Source of the DNA: Oikopleura dioica
Taxonomy: Eukaryota; Animalia; Chordata
Length of the DNA: 64,000 bases
Assembly (NCBI GenBank): GCA_907165135.1
Contig: OU015567.1
Span: 14,322,001 to 14,386,000 of the forward strand
Direction of reading: 5' to 3'
The position numbers were made by a program, and so were the translations under genes. Of this stretch, positions 1 to 55,328 are shown in pieces. The notes under the pieces were generated by a model. The model did not search any database and was not told the origin of the DNA. It worked only from the letters and a program-made list of their open reading frames with translations. The stretch's first letter is position 1; each line of letters begins with the position of its first letter.

Positions 1-3000
1 GAGTTGTTGTTTCTTCATCTTCCTCAAGCGCCAGCATGAGTTGAACGGCCGCGACTTTTGTATCGACATCAAAAATTTTCGGGTTGCTTTGGAGAGTTTC
101 TTCGGAGTCAGCAATATTTCGTGCTGTTTCGAGGTAGGTTGTGGCGGAGTCTTCATTTTTCAGCGCTTGATACATCCAAATATTCGCCCAGGCAAGTTCG
201 TCCTTGAAATTGCTCGTTTGATACATTCCTGCTTCAGGAACATGTTCGGCAAAAAAACCTTCATTATTCTCTGCGAATTGCATGACACTTTCTGCTTTTG
301 AGATGAGTTTCTGGGAGTATTCTGTGTCGTCAGCAAAGACAATACTGGTCGATGCAAGTGCACAGACTATTTGCGCAGCTAAATCGGTTCCTTCTTGATT
401 GTCTGTAACTGAGTAAATTGGCCGATTCGCTTTCATATCTTCGGCGCGACCCCAAAACTCATTCTCGTACGTCTGGTTTCCGATAGAGGCGACGATTTTG
501 GTAGAACGAGCTGCATTGTGAAGCCAGTCAGCACCATGCTTGATGATGTCTTTTACTTCTTCCAAATGTTCCCCGTAAGAATCAGGGTACTCGATGACGC
601 TCCAAGCAAGCATGGTGATGGAATAAGCCATTGGGAAGGTGTACTTCATGGTTCCTCCGCCGTCAAAGTAACCACCTGTTAAATCTGTATCGTCTCCATC
701 AATGTCTTTTGAAAATTTTAATCAGGATCTTTATGAAGTACTATACCTTGGATTGTAGCAGTCTTTCTCCATCCTATCGGAAAGTCTTCTGGAATTTCAC
801 CTGCTCTTTGAGCGTGATAAAACAGGAGCGTTTTCTGAAGCGCATGGAAGTAATCGATTCTATTTCCACTGTCTGGTCTGTCCGGATCGTAACCTTCAGG
901 ATCAGCTTGACTTCTAGCACCAGATTGACTCATGTCGCCCACTTTAAGACCTTTTCCTGGAGCTAACCGAGGTGGAGGCTTAGCGCCGTATGTCTCGTGG
1001 TCAATCTTGCCAAGAAGCGAGAATAAAAACATCGCATTGTAGTCCATAGCGACAGATGACTGCTGTTGCTTCCAGGGATCATCGTCATATCTATCAAATT
1101 CATCGGGACCACCAACCAATGCTCCATCAAGCTGATGTCGATTTGGAATTCCTGTAAACGAACCGCAGGGCTCTGGCTGCTCGGGACAGAAGGATTCTTT
1201 GTGATAGTAGCGCGTCGGATAGTCGTTTCCGTATCCAACAACATATGATCTTCCATTGTCCCCAAGAATGTAATCAAGCTGACTTTGTCCGAGAACAAAG
1301 TTCGCATCAGGATCAATTTTCATTTGAGCAGCCATGAAGCATAAACCAGCAGCTGCAGCAGCATGTCGAAGAGGTCCCCAATCGTTGAGATAGAGTAAAC
1401 CAAGGGGAGTTCGCTTAGCTTTGCCACCGTAACCTTTATCTCGGCAGAAAAGACGGAAAGTATTCTTATATCTGGCTGCTTGTGCTTGCTTTGAAATCTC
1501 CGCCATCAAGTAGTGAACAGCTGGTGTCTTGTTTTCCCAAGAAAAGGAAGAAATGTCTTTCTCAAGATGTTGATTTTTGTAGACTCCGACGGCATTGATG
1601 AGATATCTCTGCTTTCCAGTTGCTTTATAAAGCCAAATAGCAGCCCAAGCAAGCTCGTCATAAAATCCCTTGAAGGATTTGTACGCTTTTGCTGCCTCTA
1701 ATCAATAATTATAAATTCGATTATTTGAATTAAGCAAAGTACCTTTGAAAGTCTGGTCATACTTTCGCCGCTGATCAGGTTTCCACGCCATCTCAAACAG
1801 CTCCATAGCATGTCTTCGACAATCATCAGCGTAATAAGCATCGATTTCAGCAAAAACAATTGACGTGGCGGCCAAAGCAGCGGCAGCCTCAGCAACTGGC
1901 TCAGTTCCTTTGTGATTTACATCAACTTTGTAGCTCTTTCTTTGGGATACCCTCCGTGTGCCGGGAAAACCTCCGTGTGCCGGGATTCTCGGTCAAAATC
2001 CCGGCACAGGGAGGGTGGTGTTCTATAAATCCCAAAAAGCCGTTGATTTTGACCAATAAACTCTTCATATCGAGTGTTTCTGGAGGAAAACTAATTGTTA
2101 AATAAAATTCAAGACAGTTTTTGTCATATTTTACCTAACCCTAACCCAAATAAAAGAAGAATACAGTCGTAAAAGATTAAAAATCTGCTTGACCGTCATT
2201 AGAGTGTAATACATATCTGAAAACTAATTTCATGGATTAAAATTCACCACACTATTATCAGAATAAGAGACTGATTTATCCTTTGCATTCGTAAGCATCG
2301 CGAAAACAATGTCGATCTCTACCGTGACCAAATACTAAAGAAAAACTCTTCACAAAACCTTTAAAATACCGGAAACAGGAGATTTCTAGAACGTTTCGGA
2401 TTTGACCCTCCGTGTGCCGGGATTTCAGGGTTTTTCCCGGCACAAGGAGGGTACCCGCTTTCTTTGGTAGTTCAGTTTTTCGCCGTCTTCAATTCTTCCC
2501 CAGAAGTTTTCGTCATTTGTCTTGTCAGACACCTGGATGTAGAAAACGCCGTCCTCGGGGTGGCATTTCATCAAGTAGTCAGCTCCCCAGCGCAGCGTTT
2601 CTAGCGCAGCTTTTGTTTCGCTAAGTGAGTGTTATATAAATATAAAAGGCGCTTAAATTTCGCCCATTGCTATTTTTGGTTCAATGACTTCCAAGAGCGA
2701 GAGAATGCTTACCCGACATCTTTCAGGGTTCTCCAATAGTGAATCGTCGACCAAGCCATCATCGTAGTGGAAAACGCCATTGGAAAGCCATATTTAATGA
2801 ATCCACCGCCATCGTAATAACCGCCAGAGAGGTCGACACCATTATCTTTCCCGTCGTTCAACGCCGAATCACCGCGCCAGTCCAGTGGGTGGTCCTCTGA
2901 AGCCAACTTATTAGACCCGCATGATTTACGAGCATATGGGAAAAGGTTTCGCTTGCCATTGTAAATCTGACAATTACGCGAACAATTTCTGCATAATTTT

Positions 3001-3334
3001 CGGCGCTCTAGGAGATTTCCTTACCAGGAAGTTTGCCGCTCATCTGCGCGTAGAAGAATTTATAGCAGAGTTTAAGTGCCTTCGTATAATCGTGTCCGAA
3101 GCCTTCCTCATCAACTTCGACTGGGTCATTTGACTAGTTTATGATTGAATAGAGTGTTCGAAATGATTTCATACAGCATTTCTCTTAATTGACGTTTATT
3201 CAATCGCGTTCCTGGTCAAAGACGTTCCAATCGGTCTCTTCGTTGATTCCAGCGAAGGGATCAATCTCTGGTACAGCATCTACTTCTTGTGCAAGGACAG
3301 CTCCACAGCTGAGGTAGTAAAGGAGGAAAATCAT
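1..3334 (-). CDS. Secreted protein with at least two tandem GH9 (endoglucanase-fold) domains, catalytic residues substituted; multi-exon, runs off the window start
   Basis: Signal peptide [15 protein letters not shown] (ATG 3334). Hand-joined exons give GH9 motifs [108 protein letters not shown] second domain starts [20 protein letters not shown] and continues [11 protein letters not shown]...[11 protein letters not shown] in an exon (about 710 to 1) missing from the ORF track. Confidence 0.9.
1945..2457. mobile_element. Non-autonomous DNA transposon (MULE-like MITE) inserted in a GH9 coding exon
   Basis: 9-bp direct repeat ctttctttg at 1936-1944 and 2458-2466; TIRs ggataccctccgtgtgccggga / tcccggcacaaggagggtaccc; internal repeats of cctccgtgtgccggg. 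Confidence 0.85.
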
Positions 3335-7253: not shown

Positions 7254-7436
7254 TCGGCAACCCATGCTACAAAACCTGAGTCAGGATTCTGAATATTTAA
7301 ATTAAATGCCGCGCAGCGGCTTTTTTACGAACAAAGCCGCCAAGCGGCTCCGCCAAAACTACCAACTCAATCAATTATTAGAACTTACTGTCTCAGAACC
7401 CTGACTCAGGTTTTCTAAACAGGTTGCCGAGCCCAG
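7254..7436. mobile_element. MITE, family A (TIR ctgggctcggcaacctgt..gaaaacctgagtcagg)
   Basis: Inverted termini aacctgagtcagg / cctgactcaggttttctaaacaggttgccgagcccag; same TIR recurs at 8 or more other sites. Confidence 0.8.
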
Positions 7437-7849
7437 ACGTCACGGCAACATTTCTTTCAGATATTTTATTGATCAGAAAGTTTCTGTTTGCGATTCAAGA
7501 ACAGGGAATAAACCTATCACATTTATTGTTTTACCACCTGCCAAAAAAATCACGGGTGCAGGTTCTGTTGCGCGCATCCTGAGAAATACGGGCCGCTCGG
7601 CCGTCACGATCAAGTCAGGGGACGTCCGGCAGTTGCCGACAATCCATCTCCTGACAGTGGCAAACACGCATCACACACACACACATCTATAGCCAGGGAG
7701 AACTAACATCCGCTGAAAAAAGATACTTGCTTATCTCGACCGCGCGGTTTTGCCGGTCCTGTTTAGAGTGACTTGAATTTCTGCTGACCAGTGACTGGAT
7801 GGTCCTTCTATTGCATTTATTTTCATTCGAAATACAGTGACATTACAGC

Positions 7850-9700: not shown

Positions 9701-12515
9701 TCAGGGTGACTGGGTTGGCTCCAATTTGGTCTCGATCTCTGGCCGCTGGTCTCTCTTCTCCGCTTCTTTATCTCGTTTCTTCTGCTTCATTCTTAACTTG
9801 ATTGATTACTCTGGAAAATCTACACGCTAAGATCTTAATACTATGCCGCTAAGCTTCTAGCCTTACAATTCAACAAAAATTGAATGGGCACAATTTTCAA
9901 TTCGCCAATTCAATTGTAAATTGACCAAAAAGAGTGATCGATCATCTTCGTCGAGCAAAAAATACGCCCGTAATTACGATTTTCACAGAGAAATTATGCC
10001 GTAAAATTAATACGAAAACGGATGATCAATTGCGAAACTGACATTGCGCTTGATTTTAATTCGAGTGCCGAAAATTGAATCTTCCTACGATTTCAAATCG
10101 AAACTTACCGTCTATTTTGGAACCAGATCTTCACTTGAGTTTCGTTCAGAGCAAGATTGGAGGCGATTTCCACTCTTCTAGCTCTCGTCAGGTATTTGTT
10201 GTAGTGGAACTCTTTTTCTAATTCCGTCAGTTGTCGTGTTGAAAATGTCGTTCGACCGCTCCCGTTTCCTCCAGCCTGGGGTTGAAAGGCGCCGTATTCA
10301 GGGATCTTCGGAGCTGAAGCAAAATATTAAATTTATTTTCAATAGAATGAAGCAGGATTAAAGCCTCGTGAACTCTCAAAATTATGCTCGCATGAGGCCT
10401 TAGGTCGACGTTCTCAACTCGAAAACCTGTCAAGAAAACCTGAGTCAGGGTCTTAAACAGGGTCTGAGACTGAGATTTTAGTCATAGCAAAGCTGCTTCG
10501 CGGCTTCGTTTTGAATAAGCCGCTACGCGGCTTTTTATTTAAGCTCTTTCAGAACCCTGACTCAGGGTATATCTCCATGTTGCCAAGCCAAGAATGAGGC
10601 CATTTTCGAAGAAACACGAAAATATATGTCTTGAACAAACGGCTTTGTCTGCTCCATTTCCGGGAGGGCTGTTTGAGTACTTCCAAATACTCATCTTCAA
10701 CTCCACTCGACAATTATCTGTTTATTTTTCTCCCCATTTTTTAATATCGAAATTTTGGCGAGGAGGGCTGAAGAATGAAAATTGTGAGTGCGCAGGGGGC
10801 CGCTTACATCAAAGACATTCGAAAATTATTTTCGCGAAACACACTCGCGGAATGTTCCCAGCAGGCCAAGCTGCTGGTGGCGAAGGCACTCATTACACCC
10901 AGTTTTCCGGCGTTAGATTGACTTTGAAGAGAGCGAGACAAGAATTTTTCTATTCTGCCAATTTCAGCCTGGCTCCTCAAAAATATCCACCGCCGGAAGA
11001 GTTGAAACGATTCCGACGGGAGCTGTCTGTTTTTAGCTCTCTTTTTTTTTGGAAAGGGAAAGTAAAAAGGGGAGCAAGGCGCAGTCACACTTTTCATGTT
11101 TTACGATCGGAAACGGAAAGATACCCATAAATCAAGTTCTTGCGATGGCGGCCCGCCCGTGCGCCGCGTATGTAATGCTGCACGTCATAAAATGCGTACG
11201 TTTCTGACTGCTGTCCTGGGAAGTTTCCAGCGCTTAGGTCTACCCGTGCGGCTTTCTTAAAAATGAAGCCGCGAAGCGGCTTTTCATTAGAGCCCTCAAA
11301 ACCTGACTCAGCTTTTCAACAGAAATTCTTGAGCCTAGATTTCTAGCATCAAGCCACAGTAGGCGGAACAGTGGAACTGTTAGATTCTGAAGTTCACAAG
11401 TAGCTAGACTGTACACAGATTGACAATGGCCGACGAGAACTCAGAGTTGTCGTCTGTCGCGACCGAGCAGCCACTTCTCGGTCGGCCCGCGCGTTTCAAG
11501 CCACAACAAGTGTTTGCTACTTGGGAAGTACGAAGACTGAAACTGAACTCGCTGCCAGCAGCTCGAAAAAAAGTGTGAGCAAGTCCACAATTGTGCCATT
11601 TATCTCATTACGGGGCCAAATTAACTCAATTTGGAGTTGAAAGGACGATATGGTGTCAAAAATTAAATTTCGCGAGAGAGCAAAAATCGCGAAATTGCTC
11701 TGTCACATTTTTGGCGTTTTCTAACGCCTAACGCGTTGACATTCTGGCGCTATAATTTCTACTCCGCCGTGGACATTTGGGAATGTCGAGAATTGCGTTC
11801 GCGAGCGCAAACTCGAGGTGCGTCCCGTCTGACCTTGTCCCATCCATCAAAAATTGTGCACCAAAAGTGACATCATAACCCCTAACGGGATAGGCTCACT
11901 ACTTAGCCCGATGAAGGAGCCAGATCGGGTGAACACTTACTCTGTGGTCGGGGCAGACCCAAGAGCCCGGTTCCCAGTAAGAAAGAAAAAGTATTCACTT
12001 GGTCCTTCTAAGTAGCTTACTTTTGAAAACTGATATCCCCACGAAAATAAAAACGAAGACTTACGAGTTGTTTTCGGAGGGTTTCGCTTGATTTTCATCC
12101 ATTCGTAGGTCGGCCCATCATCTTTTCCTTGAAGACCAGTCGGCGACGATTGATCAGATTTGAGTCCGATGCTGTCTTGGCCACCAAAAGTCACGGGGCC
12201 AGTCGGACTCAGCGCGGCGTTGAGATGGGAGTTTCCGTTCGACGGGGTCGAGTAAGGCCCGTTGGAGTAGTAATGCGAGTAGCTCTGGTTATAACTTTGA
12301 GCGAGGTCGAGGGAGGGCTGTGAAGGCAAAAACGGCTGGTAGGAAGTTTGGTAGAGGGAGACGTCGACAGAGGAGATGTCGGAATAGCTGGCAGGTTTGC
12401 TGACGCTCGGAGTGGGCAATTGGGACAAGGCGGAGGTCGAGGTGTAGTCAGTGGCTGGGTAATGCACCAAGGGAGCACCGATGTAGTGCTGGTCGTAGAG
12501 AGAGTTTACCGCCAT
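9701..12515 (-). CDS. Hox1: Hox1 (labial/PG1) homeobox protein; exons about 12515-12065, 10313-10109, 9791-9701
   Basis: Hexapeptide [13 protein letters not shown]; homeodomain [50 protein letters not shown]|RMKQKKR with PG1-type residues; all junctions GT-AG and in phase. First in-frame ATG is 12515 (MAVNSLYD); an upstream exon is possible. Confidence 0.95.
10418..10570. mobile_element. MITE family A copy in Hox1 intron 1
   Basis: gaaaacctgagtcaggg ... aaccctgactcaggg inverted pair. Confidence 0.7.
11215..11338. mobile_element. Degenerate MITE family A copy in Hox1 intron 1
   Basis: Right TIR aaacctgactcagcttttcaacag..gagcctag and internal gccgcgaagcggc shared with other copies. Confidence 0.55.
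11839..11850 (-). promoter_or_regulatory. Candidate Pbx/Hox1 site in Hox1 intron 1
   Basis: TTGATGGATGGG on the minus strand; Meis-type TGACAG at 11700-11705. Confidence 0.35.
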
Positions 12516-13158: not shown

Positions 13159-13276
13159 GTTCGAAACCTGTGTAGAGAACCTGAGTCAGCGCCTCAGAGA
13201 TCTTCAACGAAAAGCCGCATCGCTAAAGATCTTTCTGGTCCTGACTCAGGTTTTCTACACAGATTGACGAGCTCAG
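13159..13276. mobile_element. MITE family A copy upstream of Hox1
   Basis: acctgtgtagagaacctgagtcag ... ctgactcaggttttctacacag. Confidence 0.75.
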
Positions 13277-13912
13277 AATGAAATTCAAAAAGGTGATCGA
13301 AAAGATATCAAACTCGAAATGGGTCCATATCAATTTGTAAATCCATTAGTAACTTAATTTCCTGCCATTCACAGCTGATTAGTCTGCAACTTGGCAAACA
13401 AGCTTTCGTTACGGAAAGAGCTCGTGGCCTGGAAAATTCAGCTCCGAGAAGCCACTTCTTTCAGTGCTGATCAAAGTGCGGCTGCATGACGCTTGCTTTG
13501 CTGAAAAACGCGGTCAGGTTTACTTTTGCCACGGTCGGCGAGCTTGAAAGACGCCCAGCCGAACTCTCCCAACCGGCTCAGCCGAGCAGCTAATGATTTT
13601 CAATAGCCAAATTTCCTGCAGCTCTGTAATCCCTTTCAAGGTCAGAAGAAAAGAAGAGAACTTGAAAGTTCTGGCGACTTTTATGAAAATGGATTTTATG
13701 AAAAGAATGAAATCATCAATCGATGAATATTAATCGGCGATTTGAATTAGTGAAAATCATGGACATCGTAAATCAAGTGATGGCATAGGCGGAAAAAGGT
13801 CAGAACATGATTAAATTTATGAAAATTATGATTTGATTGAGAATTTTTCCTCAAAACTTCCAGGAAATGACATCAATCCACGAAAAATACGTTAATTTGA
13901 GCAAAATTTTGA

Positions 13913-22136: not shown

Positions 22137-24518
22137 ATGCCCGCGACTCGTTTTCTATCAGACGATTTCGGGCCGCCGTTGCCTCCAGCAGATTCGGACA
22201 GAAGAACGAGGAGAAAGTCGTCAGACAGTCGAGATGGACGAAATCGTAAGCACAGGAGGCGATCCTCGAGAAGCAGATCCTCATCACATGATCGTTCAAG
22301 CCGATCTAGTCGTCGGAGAAGATCGAGATCGTCTTCGAGAGACCGGCGAAGATCATCCGGAAGCAGCAGTAGAAGGATAGGTCCATTTTTCATCCTTTTC
22401 AACCCTTTCTGAACATCAAAAATGAACCAGAAAAAGACGCAACCGAGACAGCCGGTCTTCCTCTCGCGATCGTCATTCTCGTTCGCGCGAGTCTCGCGAC
22501 CGAGACACCCGAAATCGCCGAGAATCTCGAAAAAGAAGCGTTCCCAAAGAAAAAATCACGATCACCACTTCCGCAAATTCAAAAGACCTCGACATGCGTT
22601 CCGTAAATATGAAGCCAAATGCAGAGAGCACTCCTCGAATCAGCAAAACAAAACCAGTGGCTCTCAGTGATCCATTCGCTGATGAATCGTTTGACGCGTT
22701 TGACTCTTTTGGCGGCGGAAATCTCTCGAGGCAGAGAAAGGATTCAGACACGAGGAGGAAAAATAGAACGAATAACGATTCTGACACGAGGAAAATCGCA
22801 CTTTCCACGAATCCACTCGCGGGAGAATTCAAACCAGCGGAGAGAATGAGAAAGCCGCCAACAGAAGAAGTTGCCAATCTATCTGGTAAATAAAAATCTT
22901 TCTCATTCTAGAGATAAAGCAAACACCATCTGCAATCTGCGTAGAAAACCTAAGTCAGGCCCTAACTGTTAGGGTCATGAAATTCAAACAAATTTTCAAT
23001 TCTGGCAAAGCCCCTTCGCCGCCTCGTTTTTCTTATGAACCCGCTACGCGACTAAGGACGCTGACTCAGGCTTTATAGACAGGTTGCCGAGTGCATACAA
23101 TATTTTCTCAAAACCAGCTTCATATATTCTGAGAATCCCTTTTAATCTTGATCTCTGTTTAGCTCCGTCATTAACCCTTCTTTGCGACCCATATCCGAAA
23201 AAAGACACAGCTCAAGAAAGTGAACCGAAAGAAATTCCAATCACATCCGACTCATCTGTGGACTCCACTTCCTCGGCCAGCAGAACGACGCCGAAGGATG
23301 TTCCGAACATTGAACTGCCAAATACATTTGTTACCAACGATTACGATTCTGGAGAGGACGATTACGATCCAGCTAATTGTGCCTTTAGCGGTTAGTTTTC
23401 ATAAAAACTTCTTGTTTCATATTTTTCCAACTAGACCACGAGTCAGATGACAATCCAACAAATCCACTGGCGCGAGCGCTAAACGCTTTCAAAGAAGCAC
23501 CAACGTCAAATCGTTCTTCAAGCAGTAGCATGGTTATGAGCCCTGTAACTCCTCCAACAGAAGATGAGGTTTGGACCTTCTTCTACGTTCGAGGGCTTAC
23601 TTATTTCTTTCAGGGAAGTGGAGCGCTGAAAATAGATTCTGGATCAGTGACGGACATAAGCCCAAAGCCAATGAGTGACAGTGGAAGCCTTAAGCCACAG
23701 GTGAGTCCAGTTGAATTCAGTTCTTCAGTAACACGACTAATTCAGGCAGTAGTACCTCCTCAAAAGCCAGCGCCGCCGCCAATGCAATCGCTTCTGACCT
23801 CGCAGCTTTCGCAACCCTCCTCATCTCTATTCGCGCCACTTCAGATGCCTTCAAGACAGCCACCGCTAATGTCGCCGAGCGGAGGAATCACGAGATCAGA
23901 TTCGAAGGCAGGATTGCTCTCTGCTCTTCAGAACTCGTCTTCGATTGAAAATCAGCCTCTTCTCAATATTGTTCAAAATTTGTCAGAGATTAAAAATCAG
24001 GTAAGCCTCAAGTCTCTCCGGAAAACAGAAGAATTATCGATAAAATTCAGCTGAACTTGAACAAGTCTCTTCACGACATGATAGCCCAGCAAGATAAAGA
24101 AGACAAAAAGATGAAAAAGTCGAAGAAAACCAGTTCTGGCAGAGAAGTTTTCAAGGTACTTATTTCTGAGTTCGGCAACATCTACAATCCATTATAGAAA
24201 CGAAAAGATTTCCAACGCGCGGTGGTCAACTGCTCCAAAGAAAGTATAAAGCCGTAAGTAACTGAATTTTAATGCGATAATAGTTGATTTAAAACATGGT
24301 TTTTAGGTTTTATAAAAGCAGAAAAATCGACAAAGACCAGTACAAGAAGATTATGAAGGAGTGCGTGTCCAAAGTGAGTCGTTTTCTTCAACAGCAGCTT
24401 CGTTAATCCGTCAATTCAGATTGTGCATAGCTCAAAGAGCTATACTCTGGATAAAGCAAAAGTCGCACACACGATCGAGAAATATGTGAATAAGTACTCC
24501 AAGAAATCAAGGTTCTAG
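22137..24518 (+). CDS. RS-rich protein with C-terminal SRI-like domain (SCAF11/PHRF1/SCAF1 type), multi-exon
   Basis: Long RS/RD dipeptide N-terminus; C-terminal exons KESIKP|FYKSRKIDKDQYKKIMKECVSK|IVHSSK..KVAHTIEKYVNKY resemble the PHRF1/SCAF11 C-terminal CTD-binding domain. Confidence 0.75.
22930..23092. mobile_element. MITE family A copy in an intron of the RS gene
   Basis: gtagaaaacctaagtcagg ... ctgactcaggctttatagacaggttgccgag. Confidence 0.75.
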
Positions 24519-29377: not shown

Positions 29378-29525
29378 TTATTAGATCAGGTTGGAACATT
29401 CGGCTGGGCAAATTGGTCGGCGCGAGGCTCATATTTTGGGTAAAAAAACAAAATTTCTTGGCATCGACGGGCAATCGGCCGGCCTGACTCAAAATTTTTG
29501 CTCGAATGTTCCACCCTGATAAGAC
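29378..29525. mobile_element. Small inverted-repeat element
   Basis: atcaggttggaacattcgg..aaatt / aatttttgctcgaatgttccaccctgat. Confidence 0.5.
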
Positions 29526-30013
29526 AAAAATTCGGGTCATTTTTCTAGCTTAGTTTATGTGTCCTTTGACATAAATTTGGATAGCCCAAGACCTGAGCTA
29601 ACATTTGAACACCATAACGAGGGGTATGGGTTATTCCCGGAAACCAAATTACTAGACCGAAAGTTCCGAAATCGGCACAAGAACTGTTCAATCAAATTTT
29701 TGGTCGCATTTATAGCTCGTGATTAGGTGCGTTGGAAAGCTCTGCGTCTGAGCTTTCTAAAAAGCCAATGAAATAACGCTGTCCTTCCATCTAGTGGCCG
29801 CTAGATCATACCAGTATAGATAAATTTACAGTTTTTCTAGTTTTTTGCATGGCTTGCGTCGTTCACTCGTTTATCTGTCCAACCGGCGGGCATGACTCAT
29901 ATAATATGAGTCATATTACTCAAATTGTGGAAAATATTGGCCCAGTAATCCTACGTGGGTATCATAGTTTAATGCCAAAGTCTTCAATTTATTATATGAA
30001 AAGTTTTTACTTA

Positions 30014-48006: not shown

Positions 48007-48128
48007 CTGGGCTCGGCAACCTGTCTCGAAAACCTGAGTCAGGGTCTGAACTTCAGACTCTGAAGGATCTTTTTTTTTCAGAAGATCACTCAGACCCTGA
48101 CTCAGGTTTTCTACACAGGTTATCGGAC
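48007..48128. mobile_element. MITE family A copy
   Basis: ctgggctcggcaacctgtctcgaaaacctgagtcagggtctga ... tcagaccctgactcaggttttctacacaggtt. Confidence 0.85.
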
Positions 48129-48582: not shown

Positions 48583-49710
48583 ATGAAGCTCAAGGCCTTC
48601 TGGTTCATTTCGAATTTAGTTAATGCAGTCCAGTGCGATCAAAATTGCTTAGGAAAGGAGAAAATAATAACTGTCAATAAAAAGGGATGAACTTTTTCAC
48701 AAGAAAAGAATTATTTTCCTAAAAAAAAAGCTCTTCAAAAATGTCAAAATGCCTGCTTAGTCCGGGATACTAAATGTCTTGAAAACTGCACAAAATGGTC
48801 CAACAACTCGGTCGATTCTGATGGAAGATACGCGATTTTGCAGCAGACCAGAGTAGTCGGCATCAACTTTCGTCAAGACAAGTTAGAGTCTGTCCATGGA
48901 TTCAACATGAACGGACACGAAGTTGACTTCGCCACATCTGTGGAGCACAATGGAGAGTTCTACGTAATCGGTGGTCTTGTTATGGACGTCATTTCGAAAG
49001 TTGGCAGTTGTGGGCTTCAGCCGATGTTGGAGCTGACGGACTCGTTGGTAATGGGAAAGGCGGCATCTTGGAATGGAAAGATTTGGATGTGTGGGGATAA
49101 GGACAAGCCTGAAGCCTGCTTTTCAACTGATTTGGCATCGATCAAGGCTGAGCCAAGTAGTGTTCAGGGACATTTGACAGGCGGCTTGGTTGTCACTCAG
49201 GACACGAATGTTTTACTCCGGTAATTGATGATTGAGTCATTCTTTTCTGAGAAGTTTTTTTAGAATTGCTGGATATACCAGAATAACAGAAGTTTTCGAT
49301 GAAAAGAATCAAGTCTGGCATTCGAATCTCATCGGAAACATGACGGATAGAATCCGAGGATTCAGCACGATTACGACGGGGCAGGAAGTTTACTTGCTCG
49401 GTGGATTCTCAGACATCCAAGATGATTACACGCCAAACATCTGGAAGTGGGTTTCTGGCCATCCAAAGGTACTAACATTGGGGTTCTCGATTGTACAGTT
49501 TTTCAGTTTGACGTTGTTGGAAAGTTGTTGCAGACGAGAATGAATTCAGCATCTGTGCTTGATCAAAATAAAATTTATACTATTGGCGGCCTTGACAACC
49601 TCAACAACGAGTACTTCGACCTTGAAACAAAAAACTCAAACTCAATGAAGACAATGTCTTCCCCGCAAATATTTTCTCAGCTGATTCCTCTTGCCAGTAC
49701 TCAGTGCTAA
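48583..49710 (+). CDS. Secreted protein: Cys-rich N-domain + kelch-like beta-propeller repeats
   Basis: Signal MKLKAFWFISNLVNA; CDQNCL|ALQKCQNACLVRDTKCLENC; repeats FYVIGG, IWMCG, VYLLGG, IYTIGG; first intron 48653-48730 is GA-AG. Confidence 0.8.
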
Positions 49711-49943
49711 TACTGTTGATATCTTGACAACGCCTCATATCTGAATAAAGCGGATACAAAACTGACAATTTTTAATTGTTGGCCATCTTGCTTGTTAGTT
49801 TAAGCATCGCGCCCTCAAGAGGCGATTGTAGGTATAACCTTATATGTTCATATATTGATCTACTCTGAAGTTCCAGCGCATCCTTTTGACTTTAATAAAC
49901 TTCTACGAAAGAAAGTAAATCAATCAGAGAAATTCCGACACTG

Positions 49944-50832
49944 ATGAGCGACGAAGCAATTTGTTCCATTTGGGAGCAGGCTAGAACTCCTCCTAGAATG
50001 ATTTTGGTCGATCTGTGGAGATTCTTGAATTCGAACAAGATTGACAAGGAAAAGACACCCAGCCTCGCTGCTGGCAGGCTCATTCTTTTTCAAACCATCA
50101 TCAATCGAAGTTCACGAGGACTCAGTTTATTAAAATAATTAGAAATATTTACAGAGAGAAAGCGCTCGAAATTAACTGCTTAAAGACGAAATGATTAAAG
50201 CGATTTGTGTCTATAAAAACTCAGGGCTGCGATTGGCAAAAATGACGACGGTTTTGCTTTGTTCGGGTTATTCCATGAGGCCCGTGGTTTAATCTTAACG
50301 AATGTGTATTTTTTACTAGTATATAAACCTCCTCGAAGCTAGAAGAACAACTCTACCGCATCGACCCCAAAGAGGAGACACTATATCTCCCTGGAGGATA
50401 CGCAGGTCTCTTTTTGGTCATGAATCAGAGTAATCGTGAAAACGAGTTCAAACCTCAAAGTACCGATTCGTTCATTTTCGAAGAACTCATGAAAATCGAC
50501 CTCGAGAATGGCGCCTGTGCAAGCCATTTCCGAGTTGTTGCGAGTTTTACTTTCAACTTCGAAATTCTAAAAAGCTCGCTTTGGGAAAAATGTAAGCAAA
50601 TTTTTTCAAATAACAAAGAAATCCGTTATTTTCTTCAAAAGATGAGATAAACTGGGCGTATAAAATCGGCGGCTACACCGTCTTCACAGCGCCAAATGAT
50701 ACAGTTCAACGAACAATGGTTGGAAATAGTCCTTATTCAAAAGAAGAAATTTATGAAATGCTCTATTCGACAGATCAGATGCTGATTTACTTGCTAGAAG
50801 ATATGCTAAAGGAGGTTGGCATCGTTCTTTGA
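49944..50832 (+). CDS. Multi-exon gene of unknown function
   Basis: Several open exons with plausible splice sites ending ..LLEDMLKEVGIVL-TGA; no recognisable domain. Confidence 0.5.
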
Positions 50833-50877
50833 GAATTGAAAAAGAACCAAATTTATCAATAATAATGCTAGGTAGTA

Positions 50878-51030
50878 GGGGTTATCATTCGAGCCGCCCC
50901 TAACCCAAAATCTAAACCAGGGGCTACGCCCCCGGGACCCCCTTAAGAGTTCCGAGTCCCTAACCCTAACCAATAGCTCAGATTCTAGAGATATTGGATG
51001 GCTCGAATCATAGGCTCGAATGATAACCCC
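50878..51030. mobile_element. MITE carrying telomere-like cctaac repeats
   Basis: TIR ggggttatcattcgagcc / ggctcgaatgataacccc; related sequence at about 61735-61890. Confidence 0.75.
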
Positions 51031-51546
51031 TCTCTACGTAATGCTAATCTGGAGACCAGAGTCAATGTCTTTAAGATTGCTAATAAAAAACCGCTAATAA
51101 TGATTCATAAATGATGTTGTCAACCTCTTGAAGGATCTTACAGTCGACGAAGCGCACGACGTTGTAATGATTCCATCTCAACTTGCTTTCACATTGCCAA
51201 GCTACGCGAGTAGTTGCTATTATCACTGCTTGATTTTCCTTTTGGAGACTTTTCCAAAACTGCAGTTCAACGGCTGCTCATTTTTCAACCACACTTCTCT
51301 GCTTCTTTTCAAACCGCTGGTGAGGAAACTCCTCAATAGAGGCTTGAATCCTTTTATTCCTCCGAATTATGACTCTGCAGGATCGCAATACTTCAATTGG
51401 TACATAATGGAATACAGTTTCGAGGCACACGAAGAGCTGCAAGAATGCACAATACAGGTCAAGGTTTCGCAAAGTGGCGTTATACAATTTTTGGAACAAT
51501 TAAGCTTGGACGAGTAGTTAAAGGAATTTCTAAGGGTGGACGACGA

Positions 51547-52047
51547 AAAAATGACGGACAGAGATGGAAATTTTCTAAACAGAGCCGAGCAACTTTGCGG
51601 GCATAATACAAATTTTGGAACTTTTCAGCCTTGGACGGGGAAAAAAGGAACTTTTAAGCTTGGACGAGGAAAAAAGGAACTGTTAAGCTTTGAAGAGGAA
51701 AAAAGGAACTGTTAAGCTTGGACGAGTAAAAGGAATTTTCGATTTGGAAAATTTTTTCAAATTGAATTTTAAGGGTGTTAGAGGCCTACCGGCCTAGAGA
51801 AACCCCTTAAAATGTTCCTTTCGATCCCCTCTTTCATTTAAACGGGGTTTCATTAGGCCGGGAGGCCTTAAAAACCCTTAAAATTTAATTTGAAAAAATT
51901 TTCCAAATCGAAAATTCCTTTTTTCCTCTTCCAAGCTTAACAGTTCCTTTTTTTCCTCGTCCAAGGCTGAAAAGTTCCAAAATTTGTATTATGCCCGCAA
52001 AGTTGCTCGGCTCTGTTTAGAAAATTTCCATCTCTGTCCGTCATTTT
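51547..52047. mobile_element. 500-bp foldback palindrome
   Basis: aaaatgacggacagagatggaaattttctaaacagagccgagcaactttgcgggcataatacaaatt.. is mirrored exactly at about 51980-52047; subrepeat aaaaggaactgttaagcttggacgag. Confidence 0.9.
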
Positions 52048-52055
52048 GTTGAACC

Positions 52056-55000
52056 TTGTTGCAGCGTGATTTATTCTGGGAAGAGCCAGTCTTCTTTCAG
52101 AACAAAAAATATATCGAAGAACTGGACATTTACGATGACCTGGTCAAAAAGTACGTCACCGGATATTCAGTCGATGGTGTTCCTTTAACCACAACTTATA
52201 ATTCGTGGTACGATATATCATGCAACAAAAGCTGCGATGATAATTGTGATCAAGCTATTCCCGCCATGCAGTTCTTTTTCGGCCAGCTGATCGACAAACA
52301 GCCTACGAAACTTCTTGGAAACGGTGGCCAAGGATCTGTTTTCGAATGCACATGGCACGGAACAAAAGCTGCGGCGAAATTTATTCCCAATCCGAAAATC
52401 CAATTATTCGAAGTTTTCGAAGACGCGCCGCATAATCTCATGGATCCGCTGCGCGAGAAAAAGATGAGACAGCTTTACACAAGCAAGGCCTCTGAGTTTT
52501 ACATCGCCAGGGAAATCAAGCATCCTCATGTCTTGCATGTGTTCGACTTTTTCTTGCAGCATAATAATGGCGAAGACGAGTTTGTCATCGTCTCTGAGCT
52601 CTGTGACTCGAAATTGAGCCAAATCAATTTCAACATTTCAGCCATTTTCAAGTTTTTCCTACAGGCTCGGGTCAGTATCGATCTATGCTCGGCACCTGTG
52701 CAGAAAACCTGAGTCAGGATCTGAAAGATTTACGAGACCATTTTTCATAAAAGATCTCTCGGACTCTGACTAAGCTTTTTTCACAGGTTGCCGAGCCAAG
52801 AGTTATACCATGAGGATTATTCGGCAAGGGAGAAAAGTTTTCGCCACCTTTCTCGTTTCCCGACAAAATCAGTGATTTCAGGGTCACTGATTGGTTAAAA
52901 TACCCATTTTTGCGCACTTCTGAGGCAGCGTCTAAAAACTTTCTACCTTTCCGAATCAACCTCATGGTACTTTGAGCTTATTTTTCGCGGTCCCAAGAAG
53001 CAATATGATACGTGAAAATCACTTTTGCGGAGCAAAATTCTAACCCCCATATTTCTTGTGCTCATTAGATAGAGCAACTCCTTAGGAGTCGAATGGTATA
53101 GTTTTAAGGGTCTGAGTCATCATCTATGACGTCATAAGGCCCCCCTTTGAAAAATGGGCATGTCCCCCTGTATCTCCGAAAATTTTCAGAAATATATGGA
53201 GATTTTGGCATCGTTAGAAAGCCCAGCTCAAACTGGCTATGAGCACAAGGTGTGCAAGAAAAAATTTCGACGAAAAAAAAATTTTTTGGGACAAAAACTT
53301 TTCTCAAAAAATTTTTTTTCGGAATTTTTTATTGCGCAACTAGTGCTCATAATCAGTTTGAGCTGAGCTTTCCAACGATACCAAAATCTCTTTATATTTC
53401 TGAGAATTTTCGGAGATACAGGGGGACATGACCTGACATTTTCAGGTACTTTAAGCACTAGAATTAGAGATATTCCGTTGCTTGGACACATAAAAATTAT
53501 ACCAATCGACTCCTCAGAACCCGCGCTACAAGATCAGCACAAAAAATATTGGGGTCCCGATTTTGCTCCGCAGAAGTCATTTTCATCTATCATATCGACC
53601 CTACAATAAAGGTTACATCAGCGATCAAAGCAATCGGAGAAAAGGGCCTGTCACATGGAGACGTGAAGCCGGAAAATATTTTACTGAAACGAGACAGTGT
53701 GACTGGTGAATTTTCCGTCCGCTTGGCTGACTTCGGAATGGCTGGCATTATAGGAGGAACACCTTTATTTATGGCGCCAGAAGTATTGAAAAAATCGATA
53801 CCTTATTTTTCTGATATATACTCGCTTGGCATTTCGATTCTCTTTACTGTCTATGAGATACACTTGGCGTTCAAGCTCTTCTTGATTCCAGGTTTAGTAT
53901 AAGAAAACTTTGTCGTTCTAGTCCAAATTCTTTAGTTGACAGCAACGTCCTTCGATCAGCGAAAAAAATCGCCCAAAAACATGAACTGACGAATTTCATT
54001 TCAAAAATGATCTCGGACGATCCCGCGATCAGGCCAAACATCGACCAGGTGAAGCAGTTTCTTTCGCTCCAGCGGTTCGCTTTTGCCGACGAAAAAAAGA
54101 TATCGGCAAAGGATCTCGGAATAGATGACGACCTGGAAGTCATACAGTCGAGTGTTGACAAGGATGTGAAGAAACGAGCTCTTAAATTTGAACATTCCCC
54201 ATTTTCCGCGGTGAACATTATGAATTCATTCAATCATTTGACATCGTATGAGGAACTATCAAAGGCAGGATAAAACTCATTTCTAATTTTTCATTAGAAA
54301 TAAAATTTATTAAAATTAAATACAAACTTTATTTATCCTTTGAAGGCGACGAAAATGATCAGCAAAACAATCCATGACCAGGTTTTGTTTACCCCATAGT
54401 ACTGTATTATTTGATAATTCATCAAATAGGGCGACTCTTTCAAATGTTGGGCTTTTGCTACAGCAAGTATGCTTCGATCTTCAATCCGTAAAATGGTAAA
54501 AGGATCGTTTACAGAAGTCTGTGCACTTATCCTTTATCAGCTTTATAATCGATCAAAAGAGTTGCAAAATTTCTCGGAGAAGGAAAAGGCTGACTTTATG
54601 GCTGTTCTCGATCATCCATCACACCATAAGGTAAATAAGATAATTGGTTCTTGCTTCAAGTATTTGCAGACTCTGAGATCAGAGCTGATGATGACTGTGA
54701 TTCCAACAAAAATGAACGCGAATGAACTCGAATCTCAAGCAGCACTGCTTGATCACGTGATGCACAGACTTTCAAAGGCCACATTTCTCCAGCGAGAAGG
54801 TAAAATTGTCTCATTTTTCAGCGCTTTCAGAAATTTTAGGCGTTCATCTTCTTGGCAGCTTGAAACCAATTTTCGATCGAATAAGCCGAGTTGAACCCGT
54901 CTTGGAAATATTCTTCCATCCTACGGAATATGATAAAAGCGGATCGAGTTTAAAGTTCTGGGCTCATCAACCTGTGTTGAAAACCTGAGTCAGGGTCCTG

Positions 55001-55328
55001 AAAAGCCCCTCGCTACGCAGGTTTTCAAAACAGGTTTTCGAGTCCAGTTGAAGTCTTATGGGGTTGTTGGCGACTTTTTCAGTGCTATAAATCAGAAAAA
55101 GACACTTGTTTGCCCGGTCAAGTAACGACTGTACAATTTATAACTTGAAATTGACGAAATCCTAGTACTGGGTCGGTTGAGATGAAGCATGCAATGTGCC
55201 TGTATGAATTTGATGAAAACGATAAGTCTTTTGTTTTCAAAAACAGCTCCATGGAAAAAACGACGATGAAAATTCCATTGACATCTTTCCAGGTCGAGGT
55301 TCTTTCTTTTAGTCATTTAAATACTTAG
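52056..55328 (+). CDS. Protein kinase fused to a C-terminal papain-like (clan CA) cysteine protease domain; start uncertain (possible upstream exon about 51167-51460)
   Basis: Kinase: LLGNGGQGSV, AAAKF, HGDVKPENILL, LADFG, GTPLFMAPE, SDIYSLG. Later exons: HDQ|GDSFKCWAFATASML, MKHAMCLY, FVFKNSS. Confidence 0.8.
52685..52800. mobile_element. MITE family A copy in kinase intron
   Basis: gctcggcacctgtgcagaaaacctgagtcagg ... cacaggttgccgagc. Confidence 0.8.
53085..53515. mobile_element. Foldback element in the same kinase intron
   Basis: catgtccccctgtatctccgaaaatt mirrored by aattttcggagatacagggggacatg; outer aggagtcgaatggtata / tataccaatcgactcct. Confidence 0.8.
54958..55047. mobile_element. 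90-bp MITE family A copy interrupting a protease-domain exon
   Basis: tt|ctgggctcatcaacctgtgttgaaaacctg ... caggttttcaaaacaggttttcgagtccag|tt; contains an in-frame TGA. Confidence 0.85.

Follow-up and report, generated by a model that had tools for sequence, protein, structure and literature searches.

Does one gene of the chordate Oikopleura dioica join a protein kinase to a papain-type cysteine protease in a single chain? The question is raised by positions 52,056 to 55,328 of a 64,000-nucleotide (64-kb) stretch of contig OU015567.1 (GenBank assembly GCA_907165135.1, positions 14,322,001 to 14,386,000, forward strand), which we refer to as the window and to which coordinates below belong unless a relative is named. 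There, a sequence-only reading had placed a kinase followed, across a GC splice donor, by a protease with a complete set of catalytic residues. Following up this reading computationally, we find that the gene probably encodes a kinase and, behind it, a strongly diverged thiol-protease domain of papain-like type (clan CA), the two predicted to form a single chain of at least 644 residues. A search of the literature turned up no account of such a kinase-papain chimera, whether in Oikopleura or in another animal.

Kinase and putative protease halves in one reading frame

The relatives on which this answer rests are marine-metagenome contigs of matched open reading frame (ORF) fragments, together with one contig from the Joint Genome Institute (JGI), and they fall into several lineages. 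A sister lineage (L009 to L011 with L015/L016) has 92% DNA identity to the window copy, followed by lineages at about 70-80% (L005 with L014, L001/2, L003/4 with L017, L012 and L013), by L007/L008 at about 65-70%, and by L006 at about 50% protein identity. Evaluating these contigs for both halves of the gene, we found the kinase tail and first protease exon in one ORF in L007 and L008 (...GITELSKMISRTIHDQ^gt, with ^ marking a splice site here and below) and likewise in L017 (...SYAELSKGTKIISKRVHDQ^gt), where Ile stands in place of the window's Met, so that no separate internal start is possible in L017. The first protease exon of the window matches GTKIISKRVHDQ in L017 and MISRTIHDQ in L007/L008, both of which lie within uninterrupted ORFs, and in L006 a Pkinase ORF lies some 900 nt upstream, in the same orientation. 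Because L007/L008 and L017 carry both halves in one ORF, the fused protein is real in the family and is most simply ancestral. The join between kinase and papain-type Cys/His/Asn domain that had been proposed is thereby supported by the one-ORF relatives, but for the papain fold itself no Pfam or PDB match was found when exons were searched one by one.

For the window copy, the exons of the sequence-only reading were joined by script and gave 644 codons with no internal stops, running from an acceptor at 52064/65 to a TAG at 55326-28. All of its quoted motifs and codons were found in place (TGT 54445-47, CAT 55188-90, AAC 55242-44 and the Gln codon CAG 54379-81), as were the donor AAG^GCAGGA at 54264/54265 and the acceptor ...TTTGAAG^GCG at 54345/54346. 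The resulting features, including a miniature inverted-repeat transposable element (MITE), are as follows.

52065..52670, plus strand: kinase exon K1, homologous to L007 and L014, Pfam Pkinase 25.3 bits; it holds a conserved N-terminal region, the G-loop GNGGQGSV (52317-52340) and the AxK lysine (AAAKF, 52368-52382); with a GC donor it would end at 52664 instead
52671..53611, plus strand: kinase intron, GT-AG, 941 nt, nearly all nested inverted-repeat elements
53612..53891, plus strand: kinase exon K2, Pfam Pkinase 51.7 bits (E 1e-13), with the catalytic loop HGDVKPEN (53654-53677), DFG (53729-53737) and APE (53774-53782)
53936..54264, plus strand: kinase exon K3, end of the C-lobe and tail (...NHLTSYEELSK), dN/dS 0.07 against L015
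54265..54345, plus strand: junction spacer, 81 nt, GC...AG, a GC-AG intron or an intercistronic region
54346..54381, plus strand: protease exon E1, ATKMISKTIHDQ, with ATG at 54355-57 and, at 54379-81, the Gln six residues before the Cys
54430..54495, plus strand: protease exon E2, GDSFKCWAFATASMLRSSIRKM, with the Cys at 54445-47; it probably reaches 54516
54541..54630, plus strand: protease exon E3, helical insert, starting at 54562 in an alternative model
54670..54799, plus strand: protease exon E4, TLRSELMMTVIPTK...LQREG, 78-81% identical to the metagenome ORF fragments P0001-P0003
54840..54973, plus strand: protease exon E5 as in the sequence-only reading, its last 16 nt (54958-54973) being MITE sequence
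54958..55047, no strand: 90-nt palindromic MITE in a coding exon, with 33-nt arms that are 82% complementary and copies elsewhere in the window
55021..55121, plus strand: protease exon E6, ...SYGVVGDFFSAINQKKTLVCPV, its first 27 nt being MITE sequence
55166..55328, plus strand: protease exon E7, with the His at 55188-90, the Asn at 55242-44 and the stop TAG at 55326-28

Intron-free stretches in relatives confirm this exon content (E2-E4 in P0009, E2-E3 in L007, E4-E6 in P0002), and where the window has the long kinase intron, L007 has a short intron and L014 none. Intron lengths had been put at 44-48 nt; they are in fact 39-48 nt, plus the 81 nt at the junction and the 941 nt in the kinase, and the 39-48 nt introns fit the 49-bp median of the published assembly of this genome (PMC8008620). 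The proposed donor at 54496 we consider doubtful, as it would delete a [VI]KG tripeptide that all relatives keep and reads AT in the sister lineage L009; an alternative GT-AG intron of the same length, at 54517-54561, is kept in both the window and the sister lineage. In the L017 lineage, the E2/E3 intron (L017 880-1330) has grown to about 400 nt by tandemly repeated sequence.

The call of a kinase proved sound, with Pfam Pkinase matching both K2 (above the cut-off of 31.7 bits) and K1, and with relatives L006 and L007 matching Pkinase as well. Its catalytic set is complete, such that G-loop, AxK, HGD..N, DFG and APE are all present as in non-RD eukaryotic protein kinases (PF00069), and we therefore read this half as in all probability a catalytically complete non-RD (HGD) kinase of predicted Ser/Thr type. 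It differs from the eukaryotic kinases at large in having Gly for the Arg of HRD, and in a conserved N-terminal extension (VTGY..G.PLTT.Y.SWYDI) added to the protease-like domain at its C-terminus.

Comparing substitutions between lineages, we found strong constraint on both halves. Between the window and L009, a member of the 92% lineage, the protease exons differ by 17 synonymous and 5 non-synonymous changes (synonymous divergence, dS, 0.15; ratio of non-synonymous to synonymous divergence, dN/dS, 0.07; p 3e-8), those after the MITE contributing 10 synonymous and 1 non-synonymous (E6 4/0; E7 6/1), and the kinase side (K2, K3 and E1) against L015 shows 18 synonymous and 5 non-synonymous, again with dN/dS of 0.07. 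These counts indicate in-frame translation of both halves ever since the sister lineage diverged.

These same data bear on the possibility that the window copy is decaying, with spacer and MITE as unspliced disruptions and with only a kinase ending ...ELSKAG, or nothing, being made. Such decay would suit the heavy transposon load of the locus, which has a MITE in an exon, a kinase intron built up from nested elements and, ahead of the first exon seen, a palindrome of 500 nt, and it would suit a gene for which no 5' exon or start codon was found. The dN/dS of 0.07 speaks against it, however, as it holds in the kinase and across the protease exons, also past the MITE; no exon has a frameshift or stop. 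Since spacer and MITE are shared with a lineage at dS 0.15, both are old and tolerated, which also counts against decay, and we regard a decaying copy as highly improbable.

RNA-read runs gave no depth on the window, and thus no transcript support for the window locus. A few reads (runs X4-X6) touch 53993-54023, and their flanks match L017 (406-496) at 30/30 on both sides, with a trailing flank of 28/30 in X6. From these flanks it follows that transcripts are made from the fused gene of L017 type and that another O. dioica lineage was probably the source of the runs. A silent window locus, as the zero depth might suggest, was considered and rejected: the reads belong to the L017-type homologue.

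Searching more broadly, a word search returned three metagenome ORF fragments related to the window protease (P0001-P0003, the E4 relatives listed above), and a whole-library HMMER search with 54430-54798 returned seven relatives only, all short metagenome ORF fragments, with no annotated protein and no distant relative among them; a word search with exon 7 gave no candidates. The paralogue search that the sequence-only reading had called for was run inside the window (tblastn) and found no paralogue in its 64 kb. We judge it likely that the locus belongs to a gene family, so far seen only in Oikopleura-type DNA.

The spacer at the junction

What, then, lies between the two halves in the window copy? 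Its clade carries a spacer between ...ELSK and [AT]TK-MISK, of 81 nt in the window, 73 nt in L015/16 and 61 nt in L014, which is absent from L007, L008 and L017. Across these three lineages the ends of the spacer are conserved, as AAG^GC[A/C/G]GGA and TTTATCCTT(T)GAAAG^, and its middle and length vary; against L015, 19% of its aligned sites differ and indels are added, compared with 11% in kinase intron 2. Following the acceptor, 8 of the next 9 nt are conserved and correspond to the GTK codons of L017, such that removing the spacer as a GC-AG intron yields ELSK-ATK-MISKTIHDQ, which mirrors ELSK-GTK-IISKRVHDQ of L017. The spacer sits at an AAG^G proto-splice site with an AAGGC direct repeat on both flanks, in which it resembles the Oikopleura G*-AG introns, and it is not a repeated element within the window.

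We consider it likely, and somewhat more so than the reading of the product as a whole, that this spacer is a non-canonical GC-AG intron and that the fusion is retained. The GC donor link proposed earlier is accordingly plausible, given ends conserved in three lineages and a genome that tolerates non-canonical introns, but an operon-type reading keeps weight. Non-canonical introns make up 11% of those in this genome (PMC8008620). Oikopleura operons number 2379-3124 and take in 6653-9543 genes (PMC11067885), and the median distance between their cistrons is 31 bp (PMC7986045). Even before the sequence itself is weighed, there is thus good reason to take either a GC-AG intron or an operon junction seriously.

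The operon-type reading holds that the gene has undergone fission into an operon pair, in which the kinase ends at TAA 54271-73, a poly(A) signal lies in the spacer, a spliced-leader (SL) is trans-spliced to the AG at 54345 and the protease is translated from ATG 54355, giving two proteins from one polycistronic transcript. Several features tell for it and against a retained fusion. The window spacer does hold the in-frame TAA at 54271-73 and AATAAA at 54299-54304, and its AG lies 9 nt before an in-frame Met, which together reproduce the layout of the trans-spliced operon junctions that Oikopleura has in thousands. The donor GCAGGA is moreover weak, and its +3 base varies among A, C and G as would the third position of an Ala codon, so that GC[A/C/G] GGA changes only at a synonymous-like position and fits a coding Ala-Gly-stop equally well.

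Other features oppose fission. The ancestral state is a fused ORF; the poly(A) signal is AATAAA in the window and ATTAAA in L015, but L014 has neither and its stop is displaced; and the ATK/TTK codons before the Met are conserved and are coding in L017. The end of the tail up to the break, NHLTSYEELSK, is nearly identical in L014 and better conserved than the remaining tail, which is what membership in the next domain would predict, and intron turnover is high in this genome (PMC11067885). Weighing both sides, we consider fission into an operon pair unlikely.

With the retained fusion as our preferred reading, the history of the junction would run from an ancestral state with both halves in one uninterrupted ORF, through insertion in the window clade of a 61-81 nt spacer exactly between ...ELSK and [AT]TK-MISK, to removal of that spacer as a non-canonical GC-AG intron, which would leave the product a single chain.

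The C-terminal domain

We evaluated next to the junction how far the domain beyond it resembles papain. In a six-frame search of the window, CW[AS][FY] and H[AG][MVIL]x10-22[KRQAV]NS were each found a single time, in both cases at the site that had been reported. The papain motifs that had been proposed stand in part: Q-x5-CWAF, HAM and KNS follow in papain order with a His-Asn spacing of 18, but the papain Trp after Asn-Ser and the Gly of the papain Cys motif are not matched. Among the relatives, Gln, Cys, His and Asn are conserved in every one covering them, CWA[FY] is kept in 10/10 contigs covering the Cys site, and in exon 7 the His, the Asn and 18 other columns are invariant across 7 sequences. 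All named language-model neighbours of exon 7 belong to clan CA (mostly Peptidase_C1, with C39_2, Mac-1 and GtgE) at 0.83-0.88, which is below 0.9 and serves as a lead only, and the exon-7 piece of L001 matches NCBIfam NF045837, 'putative cysteine peptidase', at matching profile positions with a sub-threshold E of 0.025.

Compared with papain family C1A (PF00112), the domain shares a predicted long helix that opens with Cys-Trp-Ala-Phe and has a Gln six residues ahead of it, and a His-Ala strand, a turn and a Lys-Asn-Ser strand at the His-Asn spacing given above. It differs in having no signal peptide or propeptide, no exon-wise Pfam match, a helical insert of about 100 residues and a kinase upstream. 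Two of these differences had been claimed from the sequence and agree with our results: a model of the N-terminal half predicts a long helix carrying the Cys and then the insert, and the domain directly follows the kinase tail, which in relatives runs unbroken into IHDQ^G...

Intracellular families offer a second comparison. Bleomycin hydrolase/PepC (C1B) and calpain (C2) have QG..CW-type Cys motifs and HA.. His motifs, and they resemble the window protein in being intracellular without a secretion signal and, for calpain, in placing the protease domain within a multidomain chain. They differ in that sequence similarity is not detectable and EF-hand or C2-like parts are absent from the window protein; we know of no kinase partner in either family.

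It is conceivable that the C-terminal domain is not papain-fold at all, its Q/C/H/N motifs being convergent or due to chance in a lineage-specific, mostly helical domain of other function. The searches give this room and count against a papain assignment: with protease exons searched singly, no family or solved structure was matched in Pfam or in PDB by phmmer/hmmsearch (E up to 10 for both) or in PHROG, and none significantly in NCBIfam, and P0009:8-92, which covers the N-terminal half only, folded alone as four helices with a predicted local distance difference test (pLDDT) score of 71 and gave generic helical matches only in Foldseek and in VIA-align. In papain, a Trp follows the Asn-Ser, and the window protein has Ser in its place; the glycine that papain has in its Cys motif is likewise not there, and disulfide cysteines are not evident. 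A chance or convergent origin would nevertheless have to account for three motifs in the right order and spacing, for putative catalytic residues that stay invariant under strong purifying selection, and for exon-7 neighbours and a sub-threshold profile match that all point to cysteine peptidases of this kind. We thus think a non-papain domain decidedly improbable.

Mobile elements, neighbouring DNA and the biology of the family

The MITE at 54958-55047 raises the further question of how the last two exons are read. It has terminal inverted repeats, is small, has at least six other copies in the window and is missing at the orthologous site in relatives, being absent from P0001-3 and P0010; relatives are without the residues FWAHQPVFKTGFRVQLK, which it encodes in the window. 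In the sequence-only reading, a 47-nt GT-AG intron (54974-55020) inside the MITE restores the frame, but we hold this intron doubtful, with its AG lost in the sister lineage, where the MITE of L009 is 17 nt shorter and about 20% diverged. The L009 copy also has an in-frame stop and no canonical splice solution, which tells against a product read through to E7, and the non-canonical solutions are too many to single one out. Constraint on the exons that follow the MITE, seen in both lineages, requires some splice that skips it, and we suggest that the MITE in the protease coding exon is spliced around so that the last two exons are read.

An exonic MITE holding a frame-restoring GT-AG is reminiscent of transposon-derived new introns (introner or MITE introns). 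The junction spacer differs from these in not being repeated within the window, and in both cases the splicing is a prediction.

Mobile sequence is widespread around the gene. The MITE family (..CTGGGCTC..AACCTGTG..GAAAACCTGAGTCAGG..) occurs at 7393-7437, 10417-10566, 13165-13278, 22929-22958, 48007-48121, 52687-52801 and 54958-55047, the copy at 52687-52801 lying in the kinase intron, and a further copy lies in the E1/E2 intron of the L009/L015 lineage. Within the kinase intron (52671-53611) are nested inverted repeats at 52806-52969 and at 53003-53595, the latter enclosing 53156-53433. A palindromic element of about 500 nt (51548-52047), with 99-nt arms that are 99% complementary and internal 29-nt repeats, stands directly before the first recognisable kinase acceptor.

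Upstream of that element, 5' exons and a start codon of the kinase gene were looked for in the window and none were found, and the TTG at 52056 is not a start codon. Several coding-looking open stretches without a family match lie at 49940-51520 (e.g., 50420-50595 and 50650-50827) and could belong to the kinase gene, as 5' exons, or to a separate one. Further upstream, 48838-49710 holds ORFs with Kelch repeats (Pfam Kelch matches below threshold), which run on the strand of the kinase and end near an AATAAA at about 49745. Elsewhere, DNA downstream of the L007 gene (L007 2081-2272) is 75% identical to window 29516-29707, near kinase-like ORFs at about 27-29 kb, and this match may mark a second related kinase gene.

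How might a kinase and a thiol protease act from one chain? Both would work in the cytosol, either upon one another or upon a common target, through either phospho-control of the protease or a self-cleavage that frees the kinase, and the setting would be a lineage-specific signalling process. The role first proposed, a phospho-regulated switch in defence or cell death, is conjecture on which our results are neutral. Tentatively, and with less conviction than for the fusion itself, we see here an appendicularian-specific family of single-chain kinase-thiol protease enzymes serving as a self-contained signalling or conflict module, whose junction may be undergoing re-engineering (by a new GC-AG intron or by fission into an operon pair) as a MITE turns into an intron. 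The junction spacer, common to three lineages, and the exonic MITE are what is specific to the window copy, and they would make the locus a dated natural experiment in how sequence inserted between two domains comes to be an intron or to split the gene, and in how an exon tolerates a MITE. Kinases and papain-fold proteases are central signalling enzymes, and in a chordate model a conserved and expanded family that combines the two would amount to a signalling architecture of a new kind.

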